Shown here: piece after piece, positions 16,912 through 39,603 of the stretch
Numbering within the stretch: position 1 is the stretch's first letter
How the letters are laid out: each line of letters begins with the position of its first letter
From: Trichosphaerium sp. ATCC 40318
Lineage: Eukaryota; Protista; Tubulinea
Direction of reading: 5' to 3'
Length of the DNA: 64,000 nt
NCBI GenBank assembly: GCA_038496445.1
Contig: JALMLS010000179.1
Coordinates: 1 to 64,000, forward strand
The notes under the pieces: generated by a model
Seen by the model: only the letters and a program-made list of their open reading frames with translations
The model's database searches: none
What the model was told of the DNA's origin: nothing
Position numbers and translations under genes: made by a program

Positions 16912-19900
16912 ATGGCTAGTTTCGTGTTCAACTTGAGAAGCGCCATAGAAGAAATAGCTCTGGAGAAGCAGCAATGCCAAACTGGGCTCGAAACTCTACT
17001 AAAAACAAGAGTACGCATTTCTAGCATATTTCGCAAGCGATTTTAGGTGTATTTACAGTTTTACGGTTATATTTTGCAAATTGTATCGTTTTTCTCATCT
17101 TCCTAACAAAATCGCGTCTTTAAATGTCAAACCAAGTGTTATTTCACCACAGTGACCACACGTCCTCATTCTCTTCTCTATAGCAATGGGAACATCAACA
17201 CCGACAAGACGCGCTTTCTATAGCTTGCAAATGGTTGCTCTTTCCGAAGTTAACCATCTTCATTGCTATAAAACTACTACCACTACTGCCAGGTACGCTT
17301 ACGAACTTGTTTTTGTTTTTTGTTCTTCCTTATTTACTCGCTTTAGAACTCATAGCTCGTATCGCCAACGAGAATGGGCTACAAGGTGTGCCTGAGGATG
17401 CCAGCGTTAGACATGCGCTCATTTGTTGCGCTTTTTCAAAAGTCATTAGCCTAGCCCCTCATCTACGGCTCAGCATACTGAAGTTCTTTACGGATCGTCA
17501 ATCTATTTTAGATCCAATCGAAAGCCTCAAACGCAGAGGCGACAATGTACGCACCAGCTACCGCATTTCAGCTTTTAACCTTTGAAAAACTTTCTCATTC
17601 TTGTTTTCCTTCTCAACTTTTCAAAGAGTCTTTTTGCTCGTTATGTTTAGTGTCGATGTGCTTATTACTATTAGGCAATGGCATTAGAGCTAGTTAAAGC
17701 AGCCTACCGATTTTTAAAATTTTCAGTGGAAGACTTCAAACCTCTTTGGAACTGGAGTCCATTGTTCACTCTCCTCGGTGATGCCTCAGGCGATATTTCA
17801 CAAGAAATAAAGGCTTTCGTAGCACAGTGCTTGGTCATAATCTACGACGTGAAAGAATCGCGTATCGAAGAAAATGCAGAGTATAAGATGCACCTCAGAT
17901 CGGACGTTATTTTAAGGTACGTGGAGTTGTTCTACTCCTTTAGTTTTTTTTGAATTTGGCCGTTTTAATATGATGAGACAAAACTTGTTCTTGATACCCG
18001 TGAGAGATATTCATCTCATTCATCCATCTGAAGAAAAAAAACCAAACTAGACTTTTTCTCTTTTGCTTTTTTTCGAGCACGTCATTGATAGTTGTCCTTA
18101 GATTCGACGAGGCTCAAGCAGAAAGCCTTCGCCTATTTTACGCTGGCGTAGGCGGTGATCATTACACGACATATAACGAGAAGGGCGATCGCGGCCAATA
18201 TATCACAGCCGATGATTTGAGCCCTTCTCTTGTCGATGTATGTTCATTCTTACTGCCAAAGAAAAACTCAACCTATGTACCTCTACGTATGGTTGAGACG
18301 CCAACTTTCGAGAAAAACTTAAAAGGTACGTATTAAGCAACCTTCAAAACGAAAATCTCTGCCTTTTTTCTCAAAAGCTTTATTTTTTTTGTTCAAGAAC
18401 CTAAAACCCTTTCCTGTTCTAAACCCTTGTTAGGCCTTGCCCTCGCTATTTGCCGTGGCAACCCAATTTTGTTGCAAGGTGTCACTGGGTCTGGTAAAAC
18501 AGCCCTTATTGACCACGCTGCATCACTTACAGGGAACTACAAGGACCTTATTAAACTCCATCTCGGCGACCAAAGCGATCCAAAAGTACTTTTGGGTACT
18601 TATATTTGCACCGATATTCCGGGTGAATTTCGTTGGATCGCCGGCGCTCTTACACAAGCCGTTGCTGAAGGGCGGTGGATAGTAATAGAAGATATTGACT
18701 TGGCACCACCAGAGGTTTTGTCTGTCCTTATCCCTTTACTTGAGCGTCGTCAGCTCTTCATTCCTGGACGTGGCGATACTATTGCTGCAGCACCTGGCTT
18801 TCAGATATTTGCTACGCAAACACTAAGAAATGCTCAGGCAGGCACAGCACGCACTCAAAATGGTACGTACCTTTTTTTTTGTGAACTCTTTTTATTTGAA
18901 AAAGTGCCACGGATAAAATTCCTGTGGTGTCATGTAAAGGCATGGCAGGGCCGCAATCTGTGGAAAATCAAGTTTTTTCTCATGGGTGCCGTTAACGCGG
19001 TCGGGTGCTACACTCTTATTGTGGTTCTCAACACTCAAAAGACGAACATTTTAAATTTTTCTCACAAAACGAAACTGCCGTTTCCTTATCGTACGGGTCT
19101 TTTCTTACTCCTACCAGCTGAACTACTTGGCAACTACTGGACTAAAGTAGTCATTGATCCTTTAACAAGCGATGAACTCTCCCTCGTACTCCTTGAAAGG
19201 TTCCCAGACTTGAAGAAACTCATACCTACAATAATCGAAACTTTTGAACTTTTAAAGTCAGGTGAATCGTCAGAGACTGAGCACCTCCAAAACAGACTTG
19301 CTCGAATGGGTAGATACATATCCACTAGGTACGTATAACCAAACAAGTCTTTACCTCTCTACAAAATCTTGCAAATACACCACATGATTAAAAAACTTTA
19401 CTACTACTCCTGAGGACCGTGATTACTCATTTTATCACCAAGATCTCTGAGGTTATAACTCAACAAAAAATCTTTTTTTAACAGCGTCAGTGCTTCAGTA
19501 CACTCACACTTTTTGCTTCCGTAGGGATGTCACCAAATGGTGTAAGCGTATAAATACTTCAGTATCAGATGTATCGCTCACAAACCACATCAGCTCTCAT
19601 TTACGGGAACTCGCTTTTCGTGAAGCCCGTGATTGCTTTTGTTCTGCTGTGTCTGATATAGAAATACGCATAGAGATGGGCCACATGATTGGCCGTGCCT
19701 GGGGGATATCCAAGGACAGAGTCAACTATTACTGGCATCACCACTCACCTTCTAATATGACGACTACTACAGTCTTTCGTATTGGTCGTGTGTCGTTGCC
19801 TAGACATCATATTCGAGAGAGAATCGGCACTGAAGGCCAGACTTTTGTTTACGGTCGTTGGAGTGCTGAAATGATGGAACGTCTCGCACAATCTGTTGCA

Positions 19901-22900
19901 CATAACGAACCTGTATTACTCATTGGAGAGACAGGAACAGGAAAGACTAGAACGATACAGAATCTAGCAACATCCTGTAACTACAACCTACGCGTTATTG
20001 TACGTTTGAGAAAAAAATTAATCCCTTTCTTGCGTTTTTCTCACTTTTTCTCTTAGAATATGAATCAACAGAGCGATAGCGCTGATCTATTGGGTGGTTT
20101 TAAACCAGTACAGATTCGTCTAATCTGTGCTCCTTTATACCGCAAATTCGTCACTCTCTTTAATAAAACGTTTTCAAAGAGAGCCAATAAGTACGTTATT
20201 CTACTCTCAAATTGCGTTACAATATGCTTACGCATCCTGCAGAGATTTCTTGGACAAAGTCGCCGAGCATTTTGGAAACAAGAGCTGGCGTAAGCTAGTC
20301 TTGATCTTAAAGCACGCTATGACGATCGTTGATAAGAAAATCAATGATAGCAATAAACGTGAGGTCGGTTCTGGAAGCCCTAACAAAAAAAACAAGAGAG
20401 TTAGCCCAGAACTCATCCAGAAATGGGAGAACTTTCGTGCTCAACTTTCAAAGTTCGAGATGCAACACGACAAGATTAAAAACACATTTGCATTCGCCTT
20501 TGTTGAGGGTGCACTCGTGAAAGCCGTACAAAACGGCGAATGGGTACTACTCGATGAAATTAACTTGGCATCAGCAGAAACATTAGAGGTACGATATCTT
20601 GACTCTTTCTTAAATGTCAGTGTACTTACCATCTCCTTTAGAGCCTTAGTGGTTTGCTTGAAGGTAACTCCATAACCTTGACTGAGCGTGGTGATATCGT
20701 ACCCATCAAGAGACACGATAACTTCAGGTTATTCGCATGTATGAACCCAGCTAATGATATTGGCAAGAAAGAGCTTCCACCTGGCTTACGTAATCGTTTT
20801 ACTGAGTTCTATGTTGATGAACTGGAAGATAAGGATGATTTACGCGCTATCGCAAATTCTTTCCTTTCCACTATCAACGGTGTTCCTTCAAACGCCATCG
20901 ACGCTGTTGTCGACTTTTACTTGGCGTCCAGGAAGAAAGCACCAGAACTAACTGATGGTGCTAATCAAAGACCTCATTACAGTCTACGTACATTCGCACG
21001 TATGTTGGAGTACACAGTACTATCACAACAGAGTGTAGGATGGCTAAAGGCGCTTTATGAAGGTGAGTTTTTTCTTTGTGATTTTTTTTTGAAAACTCAG
21101 ACATATGATTACAAAAAACAAACCTTTAAGACGGGATGTCTGATTTTAAGTGATTGTACTTTTTTTATGAAGTCTCTACAAGAAACGAAAATTCTTGTTT
21201 TGTTGCTTTTTTTCAACTCTTCTCCCTTTCGTCGTTTCCACATTCTGAAGATTTTAAATAGGTGCTATGATGAGTTTCTTGACCATGCTTAACGCTGAGA
21301 GTTACTCAAAGATGAATAAGCTGATCGACAGTGTATTCGAACCTCTTTCTACCAATGAAGCGTCTCTTGACAGAAAACCGAAAAAACCAAAGGACGGAGA
21401 TTTTGTTCAAGTTGACCAGTTTTGGATCAAAAAGGGGAAATTTACACCTCATAAAGATCAGAACTATATCTTGACTCCCTCAATTTTACGTCATCTTAAT
21501 GAGCTCGCACGTGTTGTGTCTGTCAACAAGTACCCCGTATTACTTCAAGGACCAACATCGAGTGGTAAAACGTCCATGATTGAGTACCTTGCAAATTGCA
21601 CTGGTAATCGTATGGTTCGTATTAACAACCACGAACATACGGATATTCAAGAGTACCTTGGTACTTACCGTACAGCTCAAGATGGTAAACTCATATGGAA
21701 CAACGGTATCCTTGTGGAAGCTCTTAAGAACGGCTACTGGGTTGTTCTTGATGAACTTAATCTGGCGCCTTCTGAAGTTCTTGAAGCGCTTAATCGTTTG
21801 CTTGATGACAACCGAGAATTGTTCATTCCAGAGACACAAGAGACGATCAAACCTCATCCTGACTTTGCCTTGTTTGCAACTCAGAATCCTCCTGGTGTAT
21901 ACGGTGGACGTAAAGTTCTTTCAAGAGCCTTCAGGAATCGATTTTTGGAGCTTCACTTTGATGATATTCCTGACACAGATCTTCGAGAAATTTTAAGAAA
22001 GAGATGTGGTATCCCTAATACTCACGCAAAGAAACTTGTGGACGTCATGAAGGAGCTTCAGAGACAGCGTCAAAGTAGTAGATTGTTTGCTGGTAAGCAT
22101 GGGTTTATTACTTTGCGTGATTTGTTTCGTTGGGCTGAGCGCCACCCTCGGAATACACAGTACGTTTCGCTAAACATTTTTTGAAGATTTTTTTTTTCTG
22201 TTTTCGCAATGATGCCTGGCGTACCTTTGCGTATGCCGCCCCAGTCATAAGGTCTGTTGACGAGAACACTCCCACTCTTAGCATAAACCAAAAAAACAAA
22301 CTCTTTTCTTTTTTTGAGCTTGTTGAGACTCACGTTTTAATAAGGGAATTGGCTGAAGAAGGATATGTTCTATTAGCTGAGCGGTTACGAAAAGACGAAG
22401 AAAAAGTAATAGTTAAGGTACTTATTCGATAACCTCTGTTTACTCTTTCTTTTTTTGAACCTAAAACCATAAAATGATTAACGAGCTTTACGCTCGGCGA
22501 ACTGCTGAAATTCTGTGAGCACAAGAACTTGATCTGATTTATAAACATGTCAACCTATTTCCTTACCTTACCGCGAAAAGCATCAGTACCAATACTCATC
22601 GCTATTCTAGGGTTGTATCGAGAAAATCATGAAAGTCAAAATTGACACTGACAATCTCTACAATTGGGATGTTAACCCACGCTTAAAGCCACTCAAGGCA
22701 TTAGCGCTTACTGCAACAGAAGCCCTTGGCTTCAGGATCGTGTGGACTCACGCAATGAGGCGTTTGTTTACACTTGTAGGACGTTGTGTCCGCTTTAAGG
22801 TACCACAGTTTTCCTTCTTGATAAATTTACTTTTTCAACCCACGGGATATCCAGCTCCCCTACTTGACAGTATTTTGAGTCATGAGGGGCGTTAATATGC

Positions 22901-25900
22901 CCAAAATCTAAGAAAAAACAAATCTTGTTTTTTGCATTCTTGTCTTCATTGTTCTTAGTACTAAAGTACTTTGATAGGAACCAGTAATGCTTGTTGGCGA
23001 TACTGGTACTGGTAAAACAACTGTTGTACAGTTATGGAGCTATATCCTCGGTCAGCACTTGCACATGGTGAACTGTCACCAGCACACTGAAACAAGTGAC
23101 TTTTTGGGTGGTGTAAGACCAGTTCGTGGTAAAGAAGCCATCGCAGAAGAACTTGATGGCTTACTTCGCTCATTCTTCCAACACGCAACATTTTTCGACG
23201 GCGTAGAGAAAGTTCTCGCTGATTACGATAATGTTGTGATTAAGGATAAGATGATGGTCTGGGAAGCTTCTGAAAAAGAAATCATTACTGTTGTCAACAC
23301 AGGAAAGGCTCAAGAAGCCATAGATCCTTCACAGCTCCCTTTCCTGCTGGTACGCTAGATTTTACGATCTTTATGTTCGAAAGTATTGACTTTTATCGTA
23401 GAGCTTGTCCACCGAGATAAGGCGATTGTATCATCAGTACATATCTCTTTTCTTATGGTATGATGGTCCTCTTGTTACTGCAATGAAACGTGGTGACTTG
23501 TTCCTCATTGATGAGATTTCTCTCGCTGAGGACGCCGTTTTGGAACGTATTAACTCTGTTCTTGAACCAAGTCGTCTTTTGGTTCTTGCTGAGAAGAGTA
23601 CTGTTGAGATTGAAGAACTTGTAGCTCACTCTGACTTCCGTATCTTTGCTACTATGAATCCTGGTGGTGATTTCGGAAAGAAAGAGCTGTCTCCTGCTCT
23701 ATCTAACAGGTTCACTTCTATTTGGGTTCCTCAGATATCTTCAAAAGAAGATTTATCTCAAATCATCCAAGAACGCTTTGCAACAAAAGATCTTGCTGAA
23801 AACTGGACTTCTCCTGTTCTCGAGTTTGTTATGTGGTGGGCAGAAATGCAAAATATCTCCGCTATCAGTCTACGCGATGTACTCGCTTGGGTTGGCTTTA
23901 TGAACAAGAGTTCTTCCTGGCTTGGTAACGCTAAGGCATACGTCCATGGCGCGTGCTTAGTACTACTCGATGGCTTGGGTATTACTCACCCATTACGTGT
24001 TGATGAGTTGAAAGAAGGCGCATTGAAGTTCATGCTTGGTACGCGATTTTTTTCTGAAATTTGGCTTTTTTTTTCTTGCATTTTTTTTTCCTTCTTGATC
24101 CGGCAGACACTCCTTGGTCTTTGTTAAGTAGTTAACTACATCGTACTTCCGTCTTCCCGGAAATTAAATTTCAGCCTGAGAAAAAACACCTCACGACCTT
24201 ACACTAGATGGTCATGAGACACCTGTCCTTAAGGCAAATTTTCGAAAAACTAAAAAACAAGCAAAGAAGAAAAGAAATTTCTTTCCTAAGACTTCTCTTT
24301 TTATTGATTGTTTTTATAGACCGCATACCAAAGAACTTTAGAGATGAAGCTAGACAGCTTGTTCTACACTCTACCATCGAAGAAAGACCAAAGAACACCA
24401 AACAAAGGTTCTCTATCGGAGAGTTCTGGATTGGTAAAGGAAAAGGAAGCACTAAAGGCCAGAGTTACGCCTTGGATGCACCTACAACAGCAACGAATGT
24501 AATGAGACTCCTACGTGCCATGCAGCTTGATAAACCTGTTCTACTCGAAGGTAGCCCTGGTGTAGGTAAAACAAGTCTTGTTGCAGCTGTTGGCGCTGCT
24601 GCTAATATGATTGTTCGACGTATCAATTTATCTGATCAAACTGATATTATTGACTTGTTGGGACAAGATCTACCTTCTGAGGACCCTGAACAACCTGGTT
24701 TCTCATGGCGTGATGGTATTTTCCTTCAAGGTTTAAAAGCCGGTGATTGGATACTACTTGATGAAATGAACCTTGCTTCACAATCAGTTTTGGAAGGTCT
24801 TAACGCAGTGCTTGATCATCGTCAAGAAGTTTTCATTCCTGAACTTGGACGTACATTTAAATGTCCTTCTTCCTTCAAGATATTCGCTTGTCAGAATCCT
24901 ACTGGACAAGGAGGAGGTCGTAAAGGATTACCTAAATCGTTCCTAAACAGATTCACAAAGGTAAGCGCTTTGCGCTCAAAATCCAACTAAAACCACCTCT
25001 TCTAACTCTTTTTTACAGGTCTATGTCGATAAATTCACGTCTGAAGATCTTCTCTTCATTGCAAGTGCACTTCATCCTAATATCGATAGTGAAACGCTTA
25101 AATCCATGATAACTTTCAATGATGCTATGCATCACGAGTCAATGGTTCTTTGTAGTTTTGCTAGAAAAGGAAGTCCTTGGGAGTTTAATCTTCGTGATAT
25201 TCTACGTTGGTGTAAACTCATTGATGAAAGCCCTAATAAGTCACCTGGCTTGTGGGTTGACTTGATGTACCTTCAACGTCTTCGTGAACCTGAAGATAGA
25301 GTATTTGCATCAGAACTCTATGAGAAGACTTTTGGTGAACCTCCTCTTGTTTATAAGGCTCCTTACTATCACGTAACGCCTACAACACTTCAAGTTGGCC
25401 GTTCTACTATCGAGAGAAGTCCTGATGCATCATTTTTGCCTTCATACGACACTCTCTTACTCAAGGTAAAGTTTTTCTCAGGCTGTCTTTTAACTTACTT
25501 CTTTTTATAGAATCTATCGCCAGCACTTCAACACGTCATTAAATGCGTTGATATGAACTGGATGGTCATATTGAATGGACCTACAGCGTCTGGAAAGACT
25601 ATGCTCGTGAGAATGTTGAGTAAGCTCGCTGGCAAGAAACTTCATCACTTTGCTGTGAACAGAGCTGTAGATACAACAGATCTTCTTGGATCTTTCGAGC
25701 AAATCGACTTGATGCGCCATAAACAAATTGTTTTGGATCGTATTGAGAGTTTGATCACTCAAACAACTCAAGCGCTTCTATTCGCTTCAGATGACGCTGC
25801 TAGAGCTTTGGAAGCTGGCAGAGATATTCATTGTCGCTGGCATCTTATCTCCAAGTTCAGAAATGCTCAAGGAGACGACAGTACACTATCTGGAGCCTTC

Positions 25901-28900
25901 ACAGCTGAGCAATACCGTGTCGTTCTACAACTCTTGGCTTTTGTCACAAAAATAACTGCCGAGTTCAACCTACAGCTTGATGATCCTTCTCTTACTGCAG
26001 AGGCAATGGAAACTGCTTTGGATGAGTTGAAGCATCTAGAAAAACAATCTGTCACAGGATGTTTTGAATGGATTGATGGTTTATTGCTTAACGTACGATT
26101 TCTTCGAAGTTTGCTTTTTTGGTTTTTGACTTTTATCGTACTTACTTTCTTTTTCAGGCTCTTGAACGAGGTGAATGGGTTGTATTGGATAATGTCAACT
26201 TATGTCCAGCTTCTGTGCTTGACAGACTCAATCCTCTACTTGAACCAAACGGATCTTTGATTGTTAATGAAAGAGGATTGCTTGACGGAAATGTATACAC
26301 TGTCAGCCCTCATAAAGACTTCAGACTATTCTTGGTAATGGATCCTAAACATGGTGACATTTCAAGAGCCATGCGTAATCGTGGTATCGAAATTTCTTTG
26401 TTTGACTTGCCTGTTGGTTCATCTGACATGCTTGCCTTACTTGGACAACTCGGTATTCCTGACACTATCGGTAAAGCCATGGTGAAGTTCCACAAAGACT
26501 GTGGAGAAAAGCTTGGTATTCTAGAGTCAGCAATGTCCATAAGAGACCTCCTTCGATGGTACGATCTCTTCGCCCCTTTTTTTTTGTTATTTTTTCTGAT
26601 AGTCTTCTTCAGGGGCGACCTTGCTATTGAACAGTTGCGTCGTGGTATGGATTTTGAGCCTAGTTTTATCTTAGCTATGACTCAAGTCTACGGCCGACTT
26701 GTATCTTCTCAAGACCAACAAACTCTTCTACAACAAGTTTTCTTGGACGCTTGTGGTTCACTGGATGGCACTGACCTACAAAAAGGTGTCATTCAAGGAC
26801 TAGACAAGTGTACCATCGAAACAAGCAGTGTTCGCGCAACAGTTAAGCGACAATCCCAACTGTTCTCTTGGCTTCTCGAGAAATTGCCATCAATGGAAGA
26901 CGAATACAAAGAACTCACCAACAGCCTTGTCACATTCTCTGCAATGTACTACGCTATTAACAGTACACCTGAAGACATTGATTTACGTATGACTTGGCTC
27001 GAGATAATCGGTGATAAAGAAGATGTTTCAGAGGATATTATCGGTTTCCTACAGCGCATGTTGTCTTTCTTATTTGAACATCCTTTGATTCAAATGACTC
27101 AAGACCAACTCGCTACAATATCTCACCATGTCTCTATTGACTTGACATACCAGCCTATTGATCTCTCGAGGAATGAACCTCTCTTCGATAGATTGAATGA
27201 AGCTGTTGAAGCAAGTGATTCATCAGAGGATATCAAGGCATTGTGGAAGTGTTGTCGAACTGCTATGCGATGCGCTCATCTTTTGCCAATGATCTTCCTT
27301 CATAATGAGGTTGAGCAAGAAGCTTATAGCTCTAATACGATGGGATCTGCGAAGTCTAAATTGATTGAGCAAGCCTGGGCTTTTCATAAAAAGAAGCTTT
27401 CTAGAAGAGTATTGAAGCATCCTTGCATCGCCTTCTTGGTTCCTTACTTTACCTTGACAACAGAGTTCCTTCAAGAGATACTTCAAGACGAGAACGCAAC
27501 AATCACTGATGAAGTACTCCAAGTACTAGATATCCTATTACGTCTTCGCCACGAGTTCTGGCAGTCGTTTAATGTCATGACATTTGACTATAGTCGTACT
27601 TGTCTGTGGTGGCACTGGATAAAGAAGAATATGAACACTTTGCTTGAGAAAGCCAATATGATTGGTAGCTTGCCTACAGATTTGGTTACTATCATCGAAA
27701 AGGTCGAAGACGCTCTTGAGAGTGACGGAAAGGACTACAAATGGACGTTATGGAAACATTACGGACATCCTGTTATTCTACGACGTCCACGTCTCCGAGG
27801 AGTTCTTGACAAGTTGAAGTCTTTCGCCAACTCACTTTTGTTTGATACTTCAATACGTACGACATGTCATTACGGTATTCAAGTTCTAATCTCTTTTAGT
27901 GTTGAAAGACTCACGAGAGCACAGTATATTCTACATCACTGCTGACATCAAGAAAACTCTTGTTGAAGGTATATGTACTGTATTATGGCTTGATACGTTC
28001 GATCAACCTACAAGCGAGCATAAGGCTTTGATAGATAACCTTGAAAAGTTACCAAATGAACTTGAGGCTAAACTATTGAGTTTGAAGGATAAGAAACGTG
28101 AAGAGTGGGAGATTAGACTTTGGCCTATTTATGACCACACTTCTGTCTTGGCTGAGTTCCATGTTATCACTTCTTTGGTATCACTATCTCCTCTTGATCC
28201 TAGATACAACCCTGAGATAACACATGAACAACTTCGTACTATGTTAGGTAAGTACCACAACGTTTATTTTTTTCCTTTATTTTTTTTTCTTCAAAAACCA
28301 GTTTTTCGCAATGATGCCTGGCGTACCTTTGCGTATGCCGCCCCAGTCATAAGGTCTGTTGACGAGAACACTCCCACTCTTAGCACAAATCAAAAAACAA
28401 CAACATTCTTTTTGGAATTTGTTTGAGTAGCGATTCTGATTGCTTTACTAGGACCTATAAAGAAAATGGTTGATTATGCGATTGCCCACTCGTCAAGGTG
28501 TCCAACTGACTTCATCTTTTACCAATACCTTATATGGCATGTTGGTAAGGGTGTCGGTGAAGATACTGCGACTGTTGATAAAGCATTGCTTGTTAATATG
28601 TTGTCCGAACTCATCTTCTACTTCCAAACACGTTTATGGGATAATACGTTCAAAAGACCTGCTATATTTGCTCGTAAGATAGATGTACGTCTAAAACCGA
28701 TAATAATCGCTATACAACTTTATCAACCCACGGGATATCCAGCTCCCCTACTTGACAGTATTTTGAGTCATGAGGGGCGTTAATATGCCCAAAATCTAAG
28801 AAAAAAACCTCTAACTTTGGATTCTCTTTTTGACTTCAAAGAAACTGACGTGTTATTTTCAATAGGATTCAAAACGTCCTGAGGTGGTTCATAATACTAG

Positions 28901-31900
28901 TTTGTTCGTTGAAGGATCTCCACGTCTTCATATTGGCTTTCAATCAGCTGCTATTGCTGCACTTATGTGTACATGGCAAGATACTGTCATTAAAGAGCGA
29001 CCAGTTACTATGGATCAACTTAACAAGATATCTGACTTCCTTTCGAGTTCTGATCACCCAGACACTGATCATTCTGTAACTAAGAATGACTGGAAACTGC
29101 TCACATCACTTGTGTTCCAAGTACGTATTTTTTACCCCTTCAAGAGCGCCTACTCTCTCGAAACCCCTTTTTTTTAAATACGATGATGACATTATTACCT
29201 CTTTGCACCGAATTAGACTGTAGACAACTATTGCATCCTGAGGTTTAAAAAAAAAGACGAAAAAATGAAGTTTTTTTTATCATTGTCTCTTCAAGAGCTA
29301 ACATGTTCCTTTAAGACACTCCAATGTTTCGCCTCTTCATTTACACCTGAGGCTTGGCAACAGATCATGGGCTTTGGAGCTAAGTTTAGAGATGAACTAA
29401 TGAATAGTATCGAATCTGAGCCTGGCCAGAAACTTTCTGAGCTCGATTTCGTAAAGTTCAAAGAAATCTTCGCATCCTCAACTGATCTACGATTCAAAAA
29501 CCTCGCAACTGAGTACCTTGGACCTCTACTTGAGATTCTAAAGGGAAGGATTGACTTGAGCGAAGACAAATACGGTACGCTTGACGTCTCATGGTTTTAC
29601 TCTTTTTTTTTTTCCTTTTTGATAAAAAAATTTACGTGATGATACAACGACGGTCTTCGTAAGTTTATTGACGAGGAAACTCTAACCCATATTTCGCTGA
29701 TAAATATCTATTCTCACATCAATCTATTTCTTGAGAAATTACCTCTTTAGTAACACGTTTGTTGTTTAGGACTACGAGATGATATTATACGTGGTGAAGC
29801 ATGGGTACGTTACTACCATCTTCATTTTATGACATTTTGAGAAAAAAAGAGCTAAAATGCTCCAAACTACTCCTTTATATGATTAGACAAACCGATCTCG
29901 GTTTATAACTTCATTGCTGATGCTAGGTCAGACTGATTATAAATCTACAAAAACTTTTTGTTTTTTCCTTGCTTTTTACGAGCATTGTTTTTAACTGTTG
30001 TTTTATAGGCTTACTTTGGTCTATGGAGAATGTACCTGTTACTTCCATCGAGACCTGTTGATCCAACATCCAAATACGCCCTCAAACTTGCTCACTTGAC
30101 TAATATTGTCAAAAGCATGAGAGGCGAACTTGAAGTGGAACAAAAGTCTGAAACCCTTCATACCGGTGGTATAGAAAACATTCGTATTTCTGCGCTTCAG
30201 AGCAAGTGTGACACCATCGGTGCTGAACAATCAAAGCTTGAAGCAAAGATTACACCTCGTCCAGTACCACCACAGTTCATGGCGCTCTACCAAGAACTCA
30301 CTCAATTCTCTGATACTCTCGGAAGCAAATCCAAGATCTTGGGACTTCTAAGAGATATTGAGAGCGTTAAAGATCGTCAAGATATCAACCGTGTTCTTGC
30401 TCAAGAATCACTATGGCAAGACAGCACAGAGTCGTTTGCTAAACGTGTATTTGACAAGTACTGGTGGTACCGCGACATTACCCAAGGCATCTGTAGCAGT
30501 ATCTACTTTATCAAGCAAGGTCTGCGCACAGTAGCCAGAGGGCAAGTGCAAAACGTGTCTTTGACAAAACTGACGTCTAGCGTACCTGCTGGTAATCGTT
30601 TCGCCAAGGGCCCAATCAAAGCAGCAACTTCCATCACAAGCGTACGTTTTGGTTTTTTTTTTGCGTTCGTTTTTTTCTTCTTTCTTTTTCTTGAGCACAA
30701 GATAACTTGTACGTGGTTTTAAAGCACGTACGAGGCGATACGTGCACGATAGTAACTGAGTCGCAAGTTGGAGCCTCTTAGTATGATCACTAGTGGCTTG
30801 CAAAACTCGCGGTTCTACATTTAATGAAAAAGAAATTGTTTTTTTCAGTTTTCTTTTTGCATTCTGATTACTTATGTTCTTTCAAGTCTGCCATCTCAGA
30901 GCTTATGTCCCTACCTTCAAGTGGTACATCATTCGTATCTCGATCTATCATAGAAGCCATGGAAGCCGTAGCAACAGCTAGGAGCTTGCCTATTGATTCC
31001 TTGAAGAAACTTCGATCAAGATTGCTTGCAACTTCTTTATACAGAGCTTATGGCGCTGTTGTAAACCAGGCTTTCATTGATAAAGAAGCGTTATCTTCCT
31101 TGGATCATGTCTTTAGTATCATTGTTAGCAACTGGGACAGAGATAAGGAAGAGAGGCGTTTACGTAAAGAAGAGGAAGCCAAAGAGTTTAGACTCAGAGG
31201 TAAAACTCGTATTTTCGAAACAGAGCGTGAAGGAAAGGAACAAGAACGTATTTACAGAAAAATGTTCCCAGATTTCAGTAAAGTTTTTGCCGACTTTGAG
31301 AATATTGTTGAAGGACTTGAGTTCAGTGATGATGAAAGTATGGATGAAGACGAAGAAGAAAGTGTACGTGACAATCTTTTCCTTTCTCTAAAAAACCCAA
31401 AAAATCGCCATAAAATGATTAACGAGCTTTACGCTCGGCGAACTGCTGAAATTCTGTGAGCACAAGAACTTGATCTGATTTATGTTTACTACAACCCTTA
31501 AATATGATGTTTTCTATTCTACTGTTGTCTAATCTCTTTAAAAAGGAAGAGGAAGATGATGAAGAACTCGATGAAGATGCTGAGGAAGAAGAGTTTGTTA
31601 TGACTCTTGTACAACGCTATGAACTTCATACTGTGTTCCGTATTCACCAAGAAATCTTCACTTCTCTTGGTACTTCTATGGCTCCTTCAGGTGGTGATTG
31701 GTTATCCACTGGTGAGATCAGAGATACTTGCGAATACGCATATAACACAGGAGCACAGATGCTTAAACGTGCGTTCTTTTTGATAAAAAGTTGCTGTCGT
31801 TAACATTTACTGATTTCTCTTGTTAGTCATGGAATGGGAAGCACCTAGTGTTCTTGATAAGAATGCCCGCTTGGGTCATTTAGTTGCTATGCGTGGTCTA

Positions 31901-34900
31901 CGTAATCGTATAGATGTCAGGAAGCTTGAAGCGCCAGAAGACTCTATCTTTACAAAACCAAGAGCGAGCATCTTCAAGGTATGTTTCTTCAGCCCTTTAA
32001 AACGCAAATTTCATTTTCTCGTTTACCTCGCAATGATGCCTGGCGTACCTTTGCGTATGCCGCCCCAGTCATAAGGTCTGTTGACGAGAACACTCCCACT
32101 CTTAGCACAAATCAAAAAAAAAAACTCTTTTTTTTGTTTTCCGGATTATGTCTTAATCAAGAGTAGAGCGCCAATGTTAAAGAAGTATGTATTATCTTAG
32201 AACCCGTACAAGAACTTCGAGGCAAACTTGTACATCTTCAAGAGAACACGGATGAATTCAAAGACAGTACAACTATCAAAGTACTTGTTGAGCTTATTGA
32301 TAAGATACTTGTTTACCCTGTAAACGTACCTTTCATGCAAGTACTCACAGGTCTTGAGCTTCTTGCACGTCAATCGCAGAAGTTTAACATGATATTACCG
32401 AAGAAGTGGTCTATCACAGAGAACTTGCAAGTTATTTACACAATCATCAATAGATGGCGTCGTATTGAGCTTGACAGGTGGCCTGCTGTTTTATCACAAC
32501 AATCTCTTGATGTTAAGCTTAACGCTCTTCAATTCTGGTTCCATCTTTATCGTGTTACAATAATTGATGGAGAGTCTTATGATGTACCTCAATTCCTTGG
32601 TCTCATTAAAGAGTTTATGGAGCTTACAAAGTTTGGTGAGATGGAAACAAAGCTTAATATGATTAAAACACTCTACTGTCAAATGGTCAATGAGCTTAGA
32701 CTTGGTATTGATCGTAAATTTGTATCTGAGTACGTCCATCCAAACAAGAAACTTTTTTTTTCGATTTCCATTTTTTTGAAGAACGTAAAATTTTTCTGAT
32801 TGTTTTACCTCTAGGGCTTCACGTATTGCACATATTAACGTGTTGTATAACATCTACAATATCTACAAGTTATATCTACCTGAAATCAAATCTCAAGTTG
32901 ACCGTGATAAAGAACCTATCGAACAAGAACTCAAGAACTATATCAAACTTACAAAATGGAAACCAAAAATAGAAAATTACTACAGACTTAAAGATCAAAC
33001 AGAAAAGTCTCATAGACATTTAAGTAAATTCGCAAAGAAGTTTAGATCAGTTCTAAAGACACCTCTTGCAAAGTTCTTAATGGTACTCGGTGAAAGAGAG
33101 TCAACAATAGAAGGCACTCTAGAACACAGAGAATACGAACTACCTGAACCAGAGTATGAGTTTAAAGAAATAACAGTGATGGAGAAGGACGATGATGACG
33201 AGGACGACGAAGGTGAAGAAAAAGGAAAATCGAGTACGAAGAAAAGACGAAAGTCGAAGAAACCTACACCAAAGCTTGACGAAGATGGTGAAGAGGTTAA
33301 GACTATAATTAAAGTGGAAAAGAAAGACAGATACATCCCTAAACCGCTACCTATCTTCGACTTCACGCCTGATAGCACTTTGGTTAAACCTTTCCTTAAG
33401 AACCCTCAAGTACCTTCAAAGTTATCAAAGCTATTCAATCTAGACGATAGCACATTCAGACGTAATAAGATACCTCAGTTATTCGAGAAAATCGTTAACA
33501 TGACCAAGAATGATATCTTACCTGTATTGACTAACTATCAACGGGAAAATATCAAAGGTCTTGATGACCTCTCTACTACAGTTATAACAAGATCAAATCG
33601 ATTGAGGTACGTTCATTCTTAGTGTTAATTCATAATATGATACTTACGCCTTGTTTAGAAATAGCAAGAGTGCTACAACAGGTCAGAAAAAACTTGCCAT
33701 GAAGAACTTGTTAGATGGTCTTAAGTCTGAAGGAGTTTCTTGGCTTCGTAAAGGCCTTGATAAGGAACACCGTAAACCGGAGTTCCTATTCAAGGTTGAT
33801 GCTATTGATACGACACGATTCAAGCAAGCTACTAAAGATCCTGTTGAAATCAACACAATGATACTTTGGCAGCAAGCTGAGGAATACTACTTCAAAGTTG
33901 TTCTCAAGATACAAAACTTGCGTATCGCTGAGCAGACTCACCACGGTGATATATCACAGCGTGAAGCAACCATGATCGCTGGATACCTCGAACACTTGAC
34001 CGCTATAAACATCAAACAGCGATCAACGTTTGGAACAGTAATCGACGAGTTTGTCATGTTACGTCGTCTCATTGAGACTATACATCGTATTCCTACACCT
34101 GAAAAGAAAGCTGATTTGCCTGTGTTCCCACCACAGTCTCTTGTCAAAGAGTCACTGTTGACACAGAAGACGATCTTTGATAGTGTTGTCGCTGGTGTGT
34201 TGGAATGTAATGTACTCATGCATTCCCTCAAAGATGATCCTACAAATGAAGCAGTTGTTATCTTAGAGCGATCAATGCAGAAGCTCAAAAAGATCAAGGT
34301 AAGCTTTTGTTTTCTCTTTTCTTTTTTTTTGTTGCTTTACTTCATCCTTGGCGTGTTCTTACTTTGATATCTTAGCGTCGTATTGAGCAACACATTGCTC
34401 GGTTTACCCTTGTTAAAGTCCGGGAAGACAGAGCTGAGTTGTTAATGACCAGTGATGCTATTCATTTCATGAGAAATAACACTATCGAATATGAAACCAT
34501 CAAGACACGTGTGTTGAATCAAGTCCTATCAACCGTCCCAGAGCATCTGGCTGGACCTTTCAACGAACTTCTTGAAACCACTAGTAAAAAACTAGAAGAT
34601 ACCCTTTATGACCCAGACACAAAGCCAAAGGCTAAAACAGCTAAAGAGGTACGCTATTTTTTCTGATACAAAACAAAGTAAAATTTTCAATTTGTTTCGT
34701 TTTCGCAATGATGCCTGGCGTACCTTTGCGTATGCCGCCCCAGTCATAAGGTCTGTTGACGAGAACACTCCCACTCTTAGCATAAATCAAAAAGAAAAAA
34801 CCCAAAAATTTCGCAATTTTTTGTGACTTTTTGTACTCATTTCGTATTTCTAGCTCAAAGCTCAAAGCTCTTTTGTATCTGAGTTTTCAGAATCCTTCGA

Positions 34901-37900
34901 AAAGACAGTATCTTCAATACTTGTCGTTATGCAGAACCTTAATGCTTTGGCGGAGAACCCTACAAACCGTAAGCCAAAACCTGAGGATGAAGAAAACGAT
35001 GATATGGAAGAAGAAGCTGAAGAAACTGCTCACTTCCAAAGAAGTAATAAGCACTTTATTCGTGCATTCAAAAAGATCAACGTATCTAGAATAATCGCTC
35101 TTGTGACAGAGTTAAATAGTCAAGTGGTACGTAGTTTTACAAATCCTGTTCTTGCGCGACTTGATTGCTAACGTATCTTGTCTTCAGAGCGCATTTGCAA
35201 CAGATAGTTGGTCAGACTGTCTCATTCGTAAGAAAGTTCTTAATGTATGTGCTGGACAGATGAGAAGGCTATACCCTCTCTTAAGGCAGATACAACGGAT
35301 ACAACAAATGTTCTTGTATCATTTCTCAGCCTATCACCGAGCTGTACGTTTATCACTCTTGGTTTATTTTTCTTTCAACAAAAAAAAAGGAGCAATCGCT
35401 CGCCGACTACCTCCTCCCTCTTTGCAACTTGATGATTTATGTTTCAAGAAGTTCTTTGATTAATGCCACACGCCTAATAAACGTGATGGTTGCAATATAT
35501 AGGCCCACGCTGATGCAAAAAAAACACTTTTTTTTTTATTGTGTTTGAATGAAGGCATGTCTATTGACACTTCATTTCTAGAGCGCAAAGTTTACGTACA
35601 TCTTGTCACGTATTGTGTTGGTCATTTACAAGAATGGTTATTGCATACCTGTCGAGGAAGAACAAATGGAACCTAGTGACATGGTACGACATCTTTTTTT
35701 AAAGTGCAAACTCTTTTATAAAAATCACGCCACAGCTCATCGAAATTGCTTTGTTATTTCGATTGAATGTTGGTGTATAACTTAATGATGTCTAAACGTA
35801 TTAGTCGCATCAAATAACCCGTGTTGCACATTTTCCTTTCTGATTTCAAAAAAAAACTTCAATTCTCTTTACTTTTATGCTTGAGTTCGAAATATTGACT
35901 TTTTTAAAGCTTGGTGATGGTACCGGCCTTGGTGAAGGTGAAGGTATGGAAGACATCTCCGATAAACGCCAAGATCTTGAATTGGATGACTTCAATGATG
36001 AACAAGAAATGCAACCAGACAAAGCACCAGAACAAGTCGAAAATGGGCTTGAAATGGACGAAGATTTTGGCGGCACTGAACACGACTTCGAACCCGATGA
36101 TAACCCTGATGAAGAAGACGATGAGGAACAATCCATGTCTGAAGAGATGGGCGAACTCGATCCTGATAAGGAAGAGATTGTCGATGAGAAAATGTGGGAC
36201 AGTGACGATGAGGATGATGACGGTAAAGAAAATGAAGATGAGAAATACGAGAAAGATGCACCTGTTGATAACCAAGGCGAACAAGAGGATGAGATCCGCG
36301 CTAAAGAGGAAGACGAGAAAAACAACAACGATGGCGACACTGATAAAGAAAAGCCAATGGAAGGACAAGACGACGGCCTCGATGATATGGAGGGCGACGA
36401 TGATGATTTTCTTGCCTCTGATGACGACTCTGATTCAAGTGAAGCCGGTGAAGCACCTGAGTATGAAGATACCGTGGAAGATAACTTCCATGTTCCTCCA
36501 CGACCTGAAGAGGATGTCTTTGACCTCGACGATATGGAACTTGACGATGAAGATATGGAAGACGACGAGAATGAAGAAAATGCTCCACCTGATGAACTAC
36601 CCGATGATATGGTCGGAGAGTTCCCAGAAATCGATGAGGAAGAAGAAGAACAAGGCAAAGGCGACGATGAAGATGATCAAGAAGGTCAAGGCGGCGAAGA
36701 AGAAAAAGAAGCCGACGGAGCTGACGAAGATGATATGGAAATCGAAGACAAAGAAACTGAACAACGCGAGGGAGGTGAAGTCGAAGACGAAGCCGACAAT
36801 CAAGATCAAAGCGATGAAGATTCTGAAGAGGAAGAACCTCTAGCTGCTCCTCAACAGCACTTTGAAGAGGAGGAGAAAGAAGAGGAAGTCAAAACTCTCG
36901 GTGTTGAAGAGAACACTGGAAAAGAATCCGCCAATGTTGAGGTATGTATTTTTTTTCTCATTTTTTTCTTGTTTGTCAGCGCATTGTAGCGCTTCTTTTG
37001 TTGTTTATGATTACACAAAACAAACCTTTAAGACGGGATGTCTGATTTTAAGTGATTGTACTTTTATTATGAACTCAACAACGTAAAAAGAAACTCTTTG
37101 TATTCTTTTGAAGTTTGAAGAGTGTTTTATTGATGTTCTTCTTTCTTAGTTCCTTGGAGAGCAAGATGATGATAAACCAGATGAAGAAGATAAGCAACAG
37201 CTCGATCAGCAGGAGCGCAATGCACAGGAGCAAGACCGTCTTGATACAAAAGATGAGAATGCAACTGATGAAGGTCAAACTGAAAAAGAAGCCCAAGAGG
37301 AAGACACAGACCCAAACCCTATGCGGTGCGTTGTCTTGCTTGCTTGTAAAAAAAAATTCAAAAAAAAAACCAAAACCTTCAATCTACATGACGATTTTTA
37401 TTCAAGACGGGGATGATCTGCTGATTATAACTAGAATCCTGATAGATTTATTTTTTCTCAACTTTTTTTTTGAAAATAGTTTTTTGTTGTGCGTTAGTTC
37501 TAAGTATTTTAAAGGTCTCTTGGTGATGCTCTTAAGCACTGGAAGAATAAATTAAATGTTGAAGATCCAAAAGATAGTAATGAGAATGAAAAAGAAGAAA
37601 ATCAAGATGATGAGGCACCTGAAGAAGGTGAAGAACAAGAACCTGATCAAGATAAACTTTATGAGTTTATTCTTGATAATGAAAAGACCGTTGAAGATGC
37701 TCAAGTACTTAAAGAAGCATTGGAAGACCAAGCAAAGGAACAACAAGAAGACTTGGAAAAAATGGAAGAAGACTTCATGAATGATGACGAAGAAGAAGGT
37801 GATGATGGTGAAGAAAACGTCACTGATAAAAAAGAAGAAAAGAAACCAAATGACGAAAAAGAAGATGAAGAAAATGATAATCAAGCCAAAGGAAGCAAGA

Positions 37901-39603
37901 AAAAACATCCTACGTACGCAACGTTTTACCCGCGATTTTTTCGTCGTTACTCTTCTTTTTTTTGTTTTCGCAATGATGCCTGGCGTACCTTTGCGTATGC
38001 CGCCCCAGTCATAAGGTCTGTTGACGAGAACACTCCCACTCTTAGCACAAATCAAAAAAAAAGAAATTGAATTTTTAAAACACATTGCTGTTCAGCTTTG
38101 ACTAATTGTTTAATTCTCCAGTGGTTCATTATACGATGACGAAATGGATGTTGATAAAGACAAAGACCAAGACAAGAAAGCTGCAGGTGGTGACGAAGAA
38201 GATAAACTCGACGAAGATGATGACATTGAAATGCAAGACGCTGATGTTGATCAACATACATCAACAGGACTGGACATGCTTGATATAATGGAAGACCATG
38301 AACACATAGTGAGCAAGGAAGTTCTTACATACGAAGACTATGAACGTATTCGCTTCGATCTAGAGAAGCTACTTGGTGTTTGGCGTCGTGATGTCACTGC
38401 GTTCCGTAAAGGCCAAGTACTTTGGCGTAATTTGGTTCACACCACTGCTCCATTTGCTGCCAGCCTTTGTGAACAACTTCGATTAATTTTGGAGCCTACA
38501 CAACGATCTCGTCTAACTGGCGATTATCGTACTGGAAAACGCCTCAATATGAGAAAACTCATACCGTTTATTGCCAGTAACTTCCGTAAAGATAAGATTT
38601 GGTTGCGCCGAGATCGTCCAAAGCAACGATTCTATCAAGTACGCAAACAACACAAAAACTCCAAATTCTTCTTTTTTTTTTCCTTCAAAACCAGTTTTTC
38701 GCAATGATGCCTGGCGTACCTTTGCGTATGCCGCCCCAGTCATAAGGTCTGTTGACGAGAACACTCCCACTCTTAGCATAAATCAAAAAAACAAACTCAA
38801 AAATTTCGAGCTGTTTTTTTGGATCGTTTTACTTACGTTATACAACAGATTATGATTGGTGTTGATGACTCTAAGTCAATCAAAAATACTGGTGCAAGTG
38901 AGCTTCTGACTATGTCAGTCGCTTTAATCACTGGTGCAATGACACGACTTCAAGTCGGTCAGATTGGTCTTATGAAGTTTGGAGAGTTCCCACAGCTCCT
39001 ACATCCATTCAATGTGCCTTTCAGTGATGAAAGAGCATCTTTGATACTCTCTCGACTCACTTTTGAACAAACCCAAACCAATATGCACAACTTCCTTTCA
39101 AACGCAATTCAGACTCTTGAATTGTCTAGAGGTGAAGCTCATGCTATGGCTGCTGATACAAAACAGATCTTGTTTGTTGTTTCTGATGGTAAATTCGGAG
39201 ACGCTCGCGCTGATATTAAGAAATGGGTCAGAAGGTATGTTCTTGAATCTCATAGACTTTTTCCCGAGTTTTTTTTGGTAGAAAATCTTGTTTTCGCCCA
39301 AGTACTTTTGTTCAACTACGCAGTGTTGTTTTCGTTATTAATATCGTTGTTAGAGCGAGTGAAAGCAATATCTTTGTTGTATTCATCATCATTGATGTGC
39401 GTAGTGATCCTGCTGAGACGATTTTGAAATGGCAAGATGTTGTTATTGAGATTGATCCAGTAACTAAGATGCCTAACCCAGTCGTTTCAATGTATATGGA
39501 CAAGTTCCCGTTCCCATACTACGTGCTTGTTAGACAAGTCAAAAACTTGCCAGAAATCCTTGCTGACGCTATTCGCCAGTGGTTTGAACTCACTGTAAGG
39601 TGA
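16912..39603 (+). CDS. MDN1: Midasin (MDN1/Rea1) AAA-ATPase for pre-60S maturation, multi-exon
   Basis: Six Walker A motifs (GVTGSGKT, GETGTGKT, GPTSSGKT, GDTGTGKT, GSPGVGKT, GPTASGKT), long linker, D/E-rich region, and MIDAS/VWA tail (GDYRTGKRLNMRKLIPFIAS, VDDSKS, FPFPYY, LADAIRQWFE). Confidence 0.96.
17966..18035 (+). ncRNA. Intronic C/D snoRNA, U30-type LSU guide
   Basis: C ATGATGA 17970; D CTGA 18028; guide ATCTCATTCATCCAT is antisense to the conserved LSU AUGGAUGAA(C/U)GAGAU. Confidence 0.8.
18905..19051 (+). ncRNA. Intronic H/ACA snoRNA candidate
   Basis: Hairpin CCACGGA/TCTGTGG with inner TGTCATG/CATGGCA; H box AAATCA 18965; second hairpin; ACA 19046-19048 followed by TTT. Confidence 0.6.
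19380..19454 (+). ncRNA. SNORD24: Intronic C/D snoRNA U24 homologue
   Basis: C ATGATTA, D' CTGA, C' GTGATTA, D CTGA. The D guide CACCAAGATC is antisense to LSU GAUCUUGGUG in the U24 register; the D' guide is antisense to the adjacent GGUAGUAG. Confidence 0.85.
21099..21175 (+). ncRNA. Intronic C/D snoRNA family D, copy 1 (guide AAGACGGG to LSU CCCGUCUU)
   Basis: C ATGATTA 21105, D' CTGA 21140, C' GTGATTG, D-like ATGA 21167, terminal stem AGAC/GTCT; near-identical copy at 37001. Confidence 0.7.
22204..22287 (+). ncRNA. Intronic 84-nt RNA family A, copy 1/6 (P-loop antisense, atypical U31/snR67-like)
   Basis: Identical core TCGCAATGATGCC...TGCCGCCCCAGTCA...CTTAGCA(T/C)AAA in six midasin introns. 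Confidence 0.75.
22467..22542 (+). ncRNA. Intronic C/D snoRNA family C, copy 1/2 (target unassigned)
   Basis: C ATGATTA 22474, D' CTGA 22505, D CTGA 22534, terminal stem ATAAA/TTTAT; identical copy at 31408. Confidence 0.75.
22835..22918 (+). ncRNA. Intronic single-hairpin H/ACA-like RNA family B, copy 1/2
   Basis: Stems GGG/CCC, GCTCCCCT/AGGGGC and TGAC/GTCA with an internal pocket; identical copy at 28723. Confidence 0.65.
24099..24241 (+). ncRNA. Intronic H/ACA-like RNA with an antisense element to LSU GACCAAGGAGU
   Basis: Hairpin TCCGG/CCGGA, H box AAATTA 24161, second hairpin GCCT/AGGC followed by AAA; ACTCCTTGGTC lies in hairpin 1. Confidence 0.55.
28306..28389 (+). ncRNA. Family A copy 2/6
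   Basis: Identical core (ACA variant), intronic. Confidence 0.75.
28723..28806 (+). ncRNA. Family B copy 2/2
   Basis: Identical to 22835-22918, in a different intron. Confidence 0.65.
29178..29246 (+). ncRNA. Intronic C/D snoRNA candidate
   Basis: C ATGATGA 29183, D'-like CCGA 29208, D CTGA 29238; target uncertain. Confidence 0.65.
29630..29705 (+). ncRNA. Intronic C/D snoRNA, U35/snR73-type LSU guide
   Basis: C GTGATGA 29636; guide ACGACGGTCT antisense to LSU AGACCGUCGU; D'-like CGTA; C' TGACGA; D CTGA 29697; stem ATTTA/TAAAT. Confidence 0.8.
29874..29943 (+). ncRNA. Intronic C/D snoRNA candidate (guide TAGGTCAGA, possibly SSU UCUGACCUA)
   Basis: C ATGATTA 29879, C'-like CTGATGC, D CTGA 29933, stem TTTATA/TATAAA. 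Confidence 0.65.
30693..30822 (+). ncRNA. Intronic H/ACA snoRNA
   Basis: Hairpin GCAC/GTGC plus CTTGTACGTG/CACGTACGAG with a pocket 14 nt from H box ATAGTA (30749); second hairpin; ACA 30817-30819 followed by TTT. Confidence 0.75.
31408..31483 (+). ncRNA. Family C copy 2/2
   Basis: Identical to 22467-22542. Confidence 0.75.
32028..32111 (+). ncRNA. Family A copy 3/6
   Basis: Identical core (ACA variant), intronic. Confidence 0.75.
34703..34786 (+). ncRNA. Family A copy 4/6
   Basis: Identical core (ATA variant), intronic. Confidence 0.75.
35421..35519 (+). ncRNA. Intronic C/D snoRNA candidate
   Basis: Stem TTTGCA/TGCAAA, C TTGATGA 35429, C' GTGATGG, D CTGA 35510; TGTTTCAAGA (anti-LSU UCUUGAAACA) and ATAGGCCCAC (near anti-LSU GUGGCCUAU). 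Confidence 0.7.
35781..35847 (+). ncRNA. Intronic C/D snoRNA candidate, preceded by a hairpin at 35727-35780
   Basis: C ATGATGT 35785, D CTGA 35840; target unassigned. Confidence 0.5.
37001..37080 (+). ncRNA. Family D copy 2/2
   Basis: Core differs from 21105-21170 at 2 positions; different terminal stem. Confidence 0.7.
37381..37448 (+). ncRNA. Intronic C/D snoRNA with a U21-type LSU guide
   Basis: Stem AATCTA/TAGATT, C ATGACGA, guide TTCAAGACGGG (anti CCCGUCUUGAA), D' ATGA, C' CTGATTA, D CTGA 37439. Confidence 0.8.
37968..38051 (+). ncRNA. Family A copy 5/6
   Basis: Identical core (ACA variant), intronic. Confidence 0.75.
38699..38782 (+). ncRNA. Family A copy 6/6
   Basis: Identical core (ATA variant), intronic. 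Confidence 0.75.

Follow-up and report, generated by a model that had tools for sequence, protein, structure and literature searches.

Why does one gene carry the same short RNA element, letter for letter, in six of its introns? We examined this question in a 64,000-nucleotide (nt) stretch of DNA from the amoeba Trichosphaerium sp. ATCC 40318 (GenBank assembly GCA_038496445.1, contig JALMLS010000179.1, positions 1 to 64,000 of the forward strand; hereafter the window), where six copies of an element antisense to the P-loop of large-subunit ribosomal RNA (LSU rRNA) lie within the gene for midasin, itself a 60S assembly factor. Comparison of the copies with one another and with known guides suggests that the element is probably the organism's guide small nucleolar RNA (snoRNA) for the 2′-O-methylguanosine (Gm) of the P-loop, present as six in-gene duplicates that appear to evolve in concert and equipped with a non-consensus D box. 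This had been the first reading offered in a preliminary description of the locus, as a dosage-amplified non-canonical box C/D guide, and it is the reading favoured by guide register, box layout, intron spacing and invariance of the core.

Copies of the element and their host introns

The window contains the 14-mer TGCCGCCCCAGTCA at exactly six places, all of them on the + strand, where shuffled sequences would be expected to yield none. Alignment of the six sites with their flanks revealed an invariant 80-nt core running from TCGCAATGATGC through CTCTTAGCA, followed by one variable base (T in copies 1, 4 and 6; C in copies 2, 3 and 5) and a partly conserved A-rich tract (AAAYCAAAAA...), with a tail of AAACC in copy 1 and AAATC in the remaining copies. 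GTTTT stands immediately 5′ of the invariant block in five of the six copies, and CTGA is absent from the element.

22204..22287, + strand: copy 1 (core 22204-22283), variable base 22284 (T); boxes assigned by inspection and from cmscan alignments
28306..28389, + strand: copy 2 (core 28306-28385), variable base C; about 35 nt of 5′ flank in common with copy 6
32028..32111, + strand: copy 3 (core 32028-32107), variable base C; without the upstream GUUUU run; about 31 nt of 3′ flank as in copy 1
34703..34786, + strand: copy 4 (core 34703-34782), variable base T; about 40 nt of 3′ flank in common with copy 6
37968..38051, + strand: copy 5 (core 37968-38047), variable base C
38699..38782, + strand: copy 6 (core 38699-38778), variable base T; mosaic flanks, 5′ as in copy 2 and 3′ as in copies 4 and 1

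A search with the two element halves, allowing up to 3 mismatches per 25-mer, detected no decayed, truncated, partial or antisense copies elsewhere in the 64 kb. The preliminary description had reported six sense copies in separate midasin introns, with ACA and ATA three times each at the 3′ end, and exact matches, alignment and splicing bear this out; many copies in both orientations, which it had named as the mark of a simple dispersed repeat, contrast with the six sense intronic places that we observed within the 64 kb.

The host gene was identified as midasin by the AAA_5, midasin AAA-lid and VWA domains encoded in the surrounding open reading frames (ORFs). Each copy occupies its own intron of 185-210 nt, while midasin introns in which no snoRNA-like insert was noted are shorter (61, 78 and 119 nt). 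Splicing was evaluated with contigs of four public RNA runs (X1-X4) placed on positions 34000-39600; these contigs are spliced, with the host introns of copies 4, 5 and 6 removed together with six other introns, and all intron boundaries that they define are GT..AG with the donor GTAYGY. Exact-ORF look-ups placed no independent contigs across copies 5 and 6 on record.

22160-22344, + strand: host intron of copy 1, 185 nt, GTACGT..AAG; no other GT..AG solution leaves the midasin AAA-lid frame open
28248-28451, + strand: predicted host intron of copy 2, 204 nt, GTAAGT..TAG; open frame and best splice consensus
31979-32166, + strand: predicted host intron of copy 3, 188 nt, GTATGT..TAG; frame-preserving solution
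34649-34853, + strand: host intron of copy 4, 205 nt; joint present in runs X1 and X4, GT..AG checked
37914-38121, + strand: host intron of copy 5, 208 nt; joint present in X2, with a 3-nt variant of the joint in X1 and X4
38639-38848, + strand: host intron of copy 6, 210 nt; joint present in all four runs, boundaries checked

For the first of these introns, the midasin gene of a relative runs uninterrupted across the corresponding site. In the same interval of 34000-39600, run X2 is identical to the window, whereas runs X1 and X4 differ from it by about 1-2%, mostly through exonic C/T changes, and carry a deletion of 3 nt at 37789; the public RNA data therefore come from two or more strains or closely related species.

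A putative guide for P-loop methylation

In 5′ to 3′ order, the element comprises UCGCA, the C box AUGAUGC, a 30-nt spacer with a hairpin of 7-8 base pairs (bp; GGCGUAC/GUAUGCC), the antisense ending in GCCGCCCCAGU, and CAUA at the D′ position; after a further 8 nt come UGACGA, a 13-nt second guide region (GAACACUCCCACU), CUUA at the D position, and GCA. The parts of copy 1 stand for all six.

22209-22215, + strand: C box AUGAUGC
22218-22237, + strand: spacer hairpin GGCGUAC/GUAUGCC
22234-22247, + strand: P-loop antisense; base opposite the predicted methylated G at 22241
22246-22249, + strand: D′ box CAUA
22258-22263, + strand: C′ box UGACGA
22264-22276, + strand: D-side guide
22277-22280, + strand: D box CUUA
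22281-22283, + strand: GCA

The guide is a perfect 14-nt antisense to the P-loop, whose LSU context, GGGAGTTTGRCTGGGGCGG(CA), is that of a universal 28S primer and a printed 28S fragment (PMC4517788, PMC5327576). In the Dictyostelium CD13, Tetrahymena TtnuCD11 and Trypanosoma snoTBR7 guides alike, all of them functional equivalents of yeast snR67 and human U31, the box starts right after ...CCCAGU, like CAUA in the element, so that the base five positions upstream pairs with the second G of GGGG. This G is E. coli Gm2251 and yeast Gm2619, the latter guided by snR67 (PMC11121408), and the equivalent sites are human Gm4166 (guided by U31), Arabidopsis Gm2610 (snoR35) and Dictyostelium Gm2952 (CD13), as given in PMC8817022 and PMC3511168. 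The earlier assignment of CATA as a D′ box with its +5 target on the universal Gm thus stands, in the register of CD13, TtnuCD11 and snoTBR7. Placement of the P-loop guide on the D′ side is the amoebozoan and ciliate arrangement, and, judged by its letters, the main guide with its register is what a eukaryotic P-loop guide should look like. To call the RNA an atypical P-loop antisense was in this respect an overstatement: only a handful of rRNA modifications, the P-loop Gm among them, are conserved between bacteria and humans, and a guide for this one is expected in every eukaryote.

The C box differs from RUGAUGA at its last position alone and begins 5 nt into the invariant block. Of the two internal boxes, separated by 8 nt, UGACGA shows one mismatch with its GA retained, and CAUA two; D′ boxes are weakly conserved in amoebae (PMC8817022). 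The C, D′ and D boxes assigned in the preliminary description were retained, whereas cmscan alignments favoured UGACGA over its TGTTGA as C′; one archaeal sRNA model aligned GUUGACGAG as a C-type box. Folding of the sense strand is better than that of shuffled sequences (z = -2.1), which does not hold for the antisense strand.

We placed the 3′ end of the RNA at CUUAGCA because of two independent features. The invariant block opens 5 nt ahead of the C box and closes 3 nt past CUUA, the usual limits of a mature C/D snoRNA, and in each of the six introns 59-74 nt separate the end of CUUAGCA from the 3′ splice site. The ends of four canonical C/D snoRNAs in neighbouring introns lie 62-73 nt before the 3′ splice site. 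Distances to the 5′ splice site vary from 120 to 174 nt. The spacing agrees with the position rule known for the splicing-coupled assembly of intronic C/D ribonucleoproteins (snoRNPs; PMC10234308).

Introns at 35344, 35684, 36942 and 37326: canonical neighbours, with C boxes UGAUGA, AUGAUGU, AUGAUUA and AUGACGA, respectively, and D boxes CUGA or AUGA

On this reading each copy would encode, within its intron, a box C/D-type snoRNA some 80-90 nt long that exonucleases trim out of the midasin intron after splicing. The 5′ guide, GCCGCCCCAGU with a length of up to 14 nt, would pair with the LSU P-loop and bring fibrillarin to the second of the four Gs (E. coli G2251, yeast Gm2619, human Gm4166, Dictyostelium Gm2952), which would make the RNA the functional counterpart of snR67, U31, AtsnoR35 and CD13. 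At the terminal motif, the C box AUGAUGC with the D box CUUA would form a kink-turn with A.U at the second pair, and six copies per pre-mRNA may offset a weak D box or modest host transcription. What the data show are the copies, their introns, the complementarity in its register, where the invariant block starts and stops, the regular spacing and the difference between flanks and core; accumulation of a discrete RNA, binding of core snoRNP proteins, methylation of the P-loop G, and the dosage rationale are inferred.

Several observations weigh against this reading, and the D box is the true oddity of the element. The element has no CUGA, and the box at the D position, CUUA, lacks the G of the second sheared pair, a G that is present in all other snoRNA candidates seen in this gene and in 47 of 47 Dictyostelium C/D RNAs, with both GA dinucleotides kept (PMC8817022). 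The terminal stem has only 2 bp (GC/GC) plus an interrupted extension of U-run and A-run, and the duplex energies of these T-run/A-run flanks do not exceed those of cross-pairings or shuffled sequences. The predicted fold sequesters the UGCC of the guide in the spacer hairpin. The D-side guide, whose complement is AGUGGGAGUGUUC, is an orphan; AGUGGGAG in the L1-stalk helix H76 of the yeast sequence, considered as an alternative target and set aside, would place the methyl on a G that is not known to be modified. No Rfam family reaches threshold: the element returned nothing over 30 kb at the gathering threshold or at E<=10, and the best alignments of 121 nt around copy 6 at E<=10 (cmscan) were weak, at about 10 bits. 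Comparison with SNORD31 and snR67, which the preliminary description had proposed as a check, gave no match at E<=10, as the models RF00089, RF01177 and RF01281 (U31/snR67/snoR35) did not match even in the 121-nt search. Contig depth over the element is zero, although the repeat is probably masked, since about 90 letters are skipped at repeats, and the zero is thus silent on expression. Finally, no orthologue was found in metagenome contigs, where a two-block pattern gave 18 matches, all of them chance matches in bacterial coding sequence, or in the whole midasin gene of a relative (L025), which has no P-loop antisense at up to 1-2 mismatches.

Some of these points have parallels in known cases. 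In kink-turn terms, CUUA retains the bulge-adjacent G.A, the U.U and the G-C, and changes only the second A.G to A.U; Kt-23 of Thermus thermophilus 16S rRNA, in which the second pair is likewise A.U, folds into a normal kink-turn (PMC2790904), and an L7Ae complex has been solved with a kink-turn non-standard at the same position, according to the abstract of PMC3985660. The terminal stem is missing in about half of Dictyostelium C/D RNAs (PMC8817022). We file the element as a variant rather than a canonical box C/D member, because it does not carry the defining CUGA and no covariance model recognises it. That it forms a functional C/D snoRNP on a kink-turn without the second G.A, with poor assembly offset by six copies kept by conversion, is a more tentative proposal, possible but on balance doubtful.

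Origin of the copies and alternative explanations

The flanks of the copies hold a record of their history. Local alignment revealed homology continuing past the core: 3′ of it for 20-40 nt in many pairs (among them 1-3, 4-6 and 2-3), and 5′ of it for 35 nt between copies 2 and 6. These homologous flanks are about 13-17% diverged and contain indels; the 80-nt core shows 0 differences in 15 pairs, an identity that under neutrality at 14% divergence would be expected with a probability of about 6e-6 per pair. The pattern is also mosaic: copy 6 is like copy 2 in its 5′ flank and like copies 4 and 1 in its 3′ flank, and the T/C site follows neither flank. The unit has therefore been copied as DNA together with some flank, and recombined or converted since. 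Because the core is unchanged while the flanks are about 14% diverged, purifying selection, core-limited gene conversion, or both must, on this comparison, be acting. Three other intronic RNA families in midasin exhibit the same sharp-edged identity, so the process is general in this gene. The six copies would thus have arisen by intron-to-intron DNA duplication, with purifying selection and/or gene conversion preserving their identity.

Two other routes were considered and rejected. A snoRNA retroposon does not fit the homology extending 20-40 nt past the RNA, the A-rich tail AYAAAYCAAAAA common to the copies, or the confinement of all copies to the sense strand of one gene; no target-site duplication was seen by eye at the copies. 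An introner-like element does not fit intron ends that are unrelated beyond the splice consensus. The relative is without all six host introns but also without the short snoRNA-free introns of the window, and so gives no specific support for an element that created its own introns.

The history bears directly on a first alternative, namely that the element is a repeat derived from a snoRNA and now functionless: a P-loop guide whose D box is disabled, recently copied among midasin introns by duplication, conversion or retroposition and yielding no stable RNA. The D box is broken by usual criteria, no Rfam match reaches threshold, every copy has an A-rich tract behind it, the mobility of snoRNAs is well established (PMC3511168), and the zero contig depth would fit as well, though the repeat is probably masked. 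Against this, the core has accumulated 0 substitutions per 80 nt in 15 pairs against about 14% divergence with indels in the flanks, and the 64 kb hold no decayed, truncated or antisense copies. The constant distance to the 3′ splice site is that of functional neighbours, and the flank homology past the RNA, with the common AAAYC tail, opposes independent retroposition of a mature RNA. We consider this explanation unlikely. The earlier suggestion of an element that spreads between introns accordingly survives as duplication within the gene, but not as a decaying selfish repeat.

A second alternative, which we regard as improbable, accepts the P-loop pairing but not the methylation: the RNA would be a chaperone or placeholder, or a shorter RNA with another terminal motif. 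In the shorter variant, the leader GUUUUCG pairs with CGAGAAC right after UUGA, both G.A pairs are intact and the RNA ends about 16 nt earlier. The minimum-free-energy fold does use this 12-bp helix (also in copies 4 and 5), UUGA followed by a 7-bp stem restores the GA missing from CUUA, and copy 3, whose leader is different, has UUCUCGU complementary to ACGAGAA. The resulting bulge would, however, be 4 nt instead of 3, no room would be left for a C′ box or second guide, and the RNA would exclude the 16 nt that follow GAGAAC, although these are invariant in 6/6 copies while the true flanks diverge. Its 3′ end would also lie 75-90 nt from the 3′ splice site, in contrast to 62-73 nt in the canonical neighbours. 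As for a chaperone, C/D snoRNAs of this type exist, snR190 being an example (PMC11879421), but the guide register exactly fits methylation of a conserved site and the second clamp is at chance level. This clamp, on which the chaperone idea of the preliminary description was based, is the near-complementarity of ACTCCCAC to the stretch 5′ of the P-loop; its duplex energy of -12.1 kcal/mol is equalled by 30-38% of shuffled or random sequences and is thus no better than chance. The same comparison, stated for the second arm ACUCCCAC against GUGGGGAGU, gives p about 0.3-0.4 relative to composition-matched shuffled or random sequences.

A hybrid of C/D and H/ACA RNA, with a 3′ hairpin, A(C/U)A 3 nt from the end, and binding of Cbf5/Nhp2, had been suggested by the H/ACA-like look of the 3′ end. 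ACA or AUA does follow the core, and AUA is a tolerated variant of ACA. No hairpin abuts this motif in the predicted fold, however, where about 25 nt before A(C/U)A are unpaired; with a continuous antisense the RNA lacks a pseudouridylation pocket, the invariant block ends right before the variable base, and a two-hairpin H/ACA RNA would be twice as long. The H/ACA-like end is therefore given up, and the hybrid is very unlikely. Equally hard to credit is an assembly or polishing artefact: consensus polishing can make dispersed repeats exactly identical, but the unit is shorter than ordinary reads and lies in six unique contexts, the 3/3 T/C difference and the flank differences are retained, and three other intronic families in midasin show the same pattern.

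The favoured reading, a duplicated P-loop guide, would mean that this locus probably supplies the P-loop guide in a little-studied amoeba. Its D box breaks the rule of both G.A pairs and offers a natural test of the D-box degeneracy that a snoRNP tolerates: should the RNA prove to accumulate and the P-loop G to be methylated, the D-box G would be dispensable for Snu13/Nop58 assembly in vivo, and dosage amplification within a gene would appear as an evolutionary fix. The six letter-perfect copies inside one protein-coding host, with their mosaic flanks, would make a clean small-scale case of concerted evolution among intronic snoRNA paralogues. The general picture of snoRNA biology is unchanged, as target and mechanism are textbook.

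Relatives, neighbouring RNAs and known systems

Protein look-ups placed the closest retrievable genomic relatives at about 49% identity in the flanking exon. The complete midasin gene L025 has short introns, at most one of them snoRNA-like; this intron, the only one of its kind seen there, lies at L025:5065-5292 (AAUGAUGU ... CCUGA). The region L025:5293-9954 is one exon of 1553 codons, against about six introns in the window at ~21405-26865, and the splice signals are GTAAGT and CTAAC in L025 and GTAYGY in the window gene. As L025 midasin is nearly without snoRNA-like introns, the heavy snoRNA load of midasin is specific to the lineage of the window.

Many other C/D snoRNAs are hosted by the same gene, and the following candidates were observed.

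19378-19454, + strand: SNORD24-like box C/D snoRNA in a midasin intron, 42 bits against a gathering threshold of 41; AUGAUUA, CUGA
21104-21174 and 37006-37076, + strand: two-copy C/D family, 96% identical; C box AUGAUUA, D box AUGA (U-A for the usual closing G-C)
22467-22542 and 31408-31483, + strand: two-copy family of 76 nt, 100% identical, canonical C/D; sharp boundaries, unrelated flanks
22829-22918 and 28717-28806, + strand: two-copy family of 90 nt, 99% identical, no clear boxes, two short hairpins; sharp boundaries, unrelated flanks
35344-35581 and 35684-35909, + strand: introns with one canonical C/D candidate each, UGAUGA...CUGA-UGCA and AUGAUGU...CUGA; an A-run of 8-9 nt after both
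37326-37514, + strand: intron with a canonical C/D candidate, RNA at about 37388-37445, AUGACGA ... CUGC / UGAUUA ... CUGA

In the 21104/37006 family each copy has complementary flanks of its own (AGAC/GUCU and GUUGUU/AACAAC), that is, covariation of the terminal stem between paralogues. Over the intron 37326-37514, contig depth in X1 and X4 climbs to several times that of the mRNA, a hint of an abundant and stable RNA from this intron. In unrelated midasin snoRNAs of several introns (16912-39603, + strand), an A-rich tract recurs 3-15 nt 3′ of the D box; it could be a processing signal, one arm of an external stem, or a leftover from copying.

Among known systems, the best though weak Rfam alignments are to TtnuCD11 of Tetrahymena (RF02288), with a C box, a short spacer, GCCGCCCCAGU and then AAUA in its consensus, and snoTBR7 of Trypanosoma (RF00295), with the consensus GCCCCAGU followed by CUGA. 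The element scores about 10 bits against them, compared with gathering thresholds of 70 and 45, and differs by a 13-nt spacer insertion that forms the hairpin. CD13 of Dictyostelium discoideum (PMC8817022) is an amoebozoan guide for 26S Gm2952 with the D′ guide ACCGCCCCAGU|CUGC, its antisense CCGCCCCAGU standing directly 5′ of a degenerate D′ box in identical register. Unlike the element, CD13 has a canonical C box (AUGAUGA) and D box (CUGA), a D guide for 26S A1370 and no spacer hairpin, and the supplement text does not present it as a six-copy intronic family.

The guides snR67, SNORD31 (U31) and snoR35 of clan CL00053, which traces to the last eukaryotic common ancestor (PMC3511168), have the same target (Gm2619, Gm4166 and Gm2610, respectively). 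They share no detectable covariance-model similarity with the element, whose D box is CUUA, and the second guide of snR67, which targets Um2724 (2′-O-methyluridine; PMC11121408), differs from that of the element. As the structural precedent, Kt-23 likewise has A.U where its bulge-distal second pair would be A.G; it is a ribosomal kink-turn, whereas that of the element is a predicted snoRNA C/D motif. The arrangement of the copies resembles the multi-copy intronic snoRNA paralogues attributed to intragenomic mobility (PMC3511168), in sense orientation, in separate introns and in one ribosome-biogenesis host; it differs from them in its six exactly identical copies, its protein-coding host and its mosaic flanks, which imply conversion or recombination.

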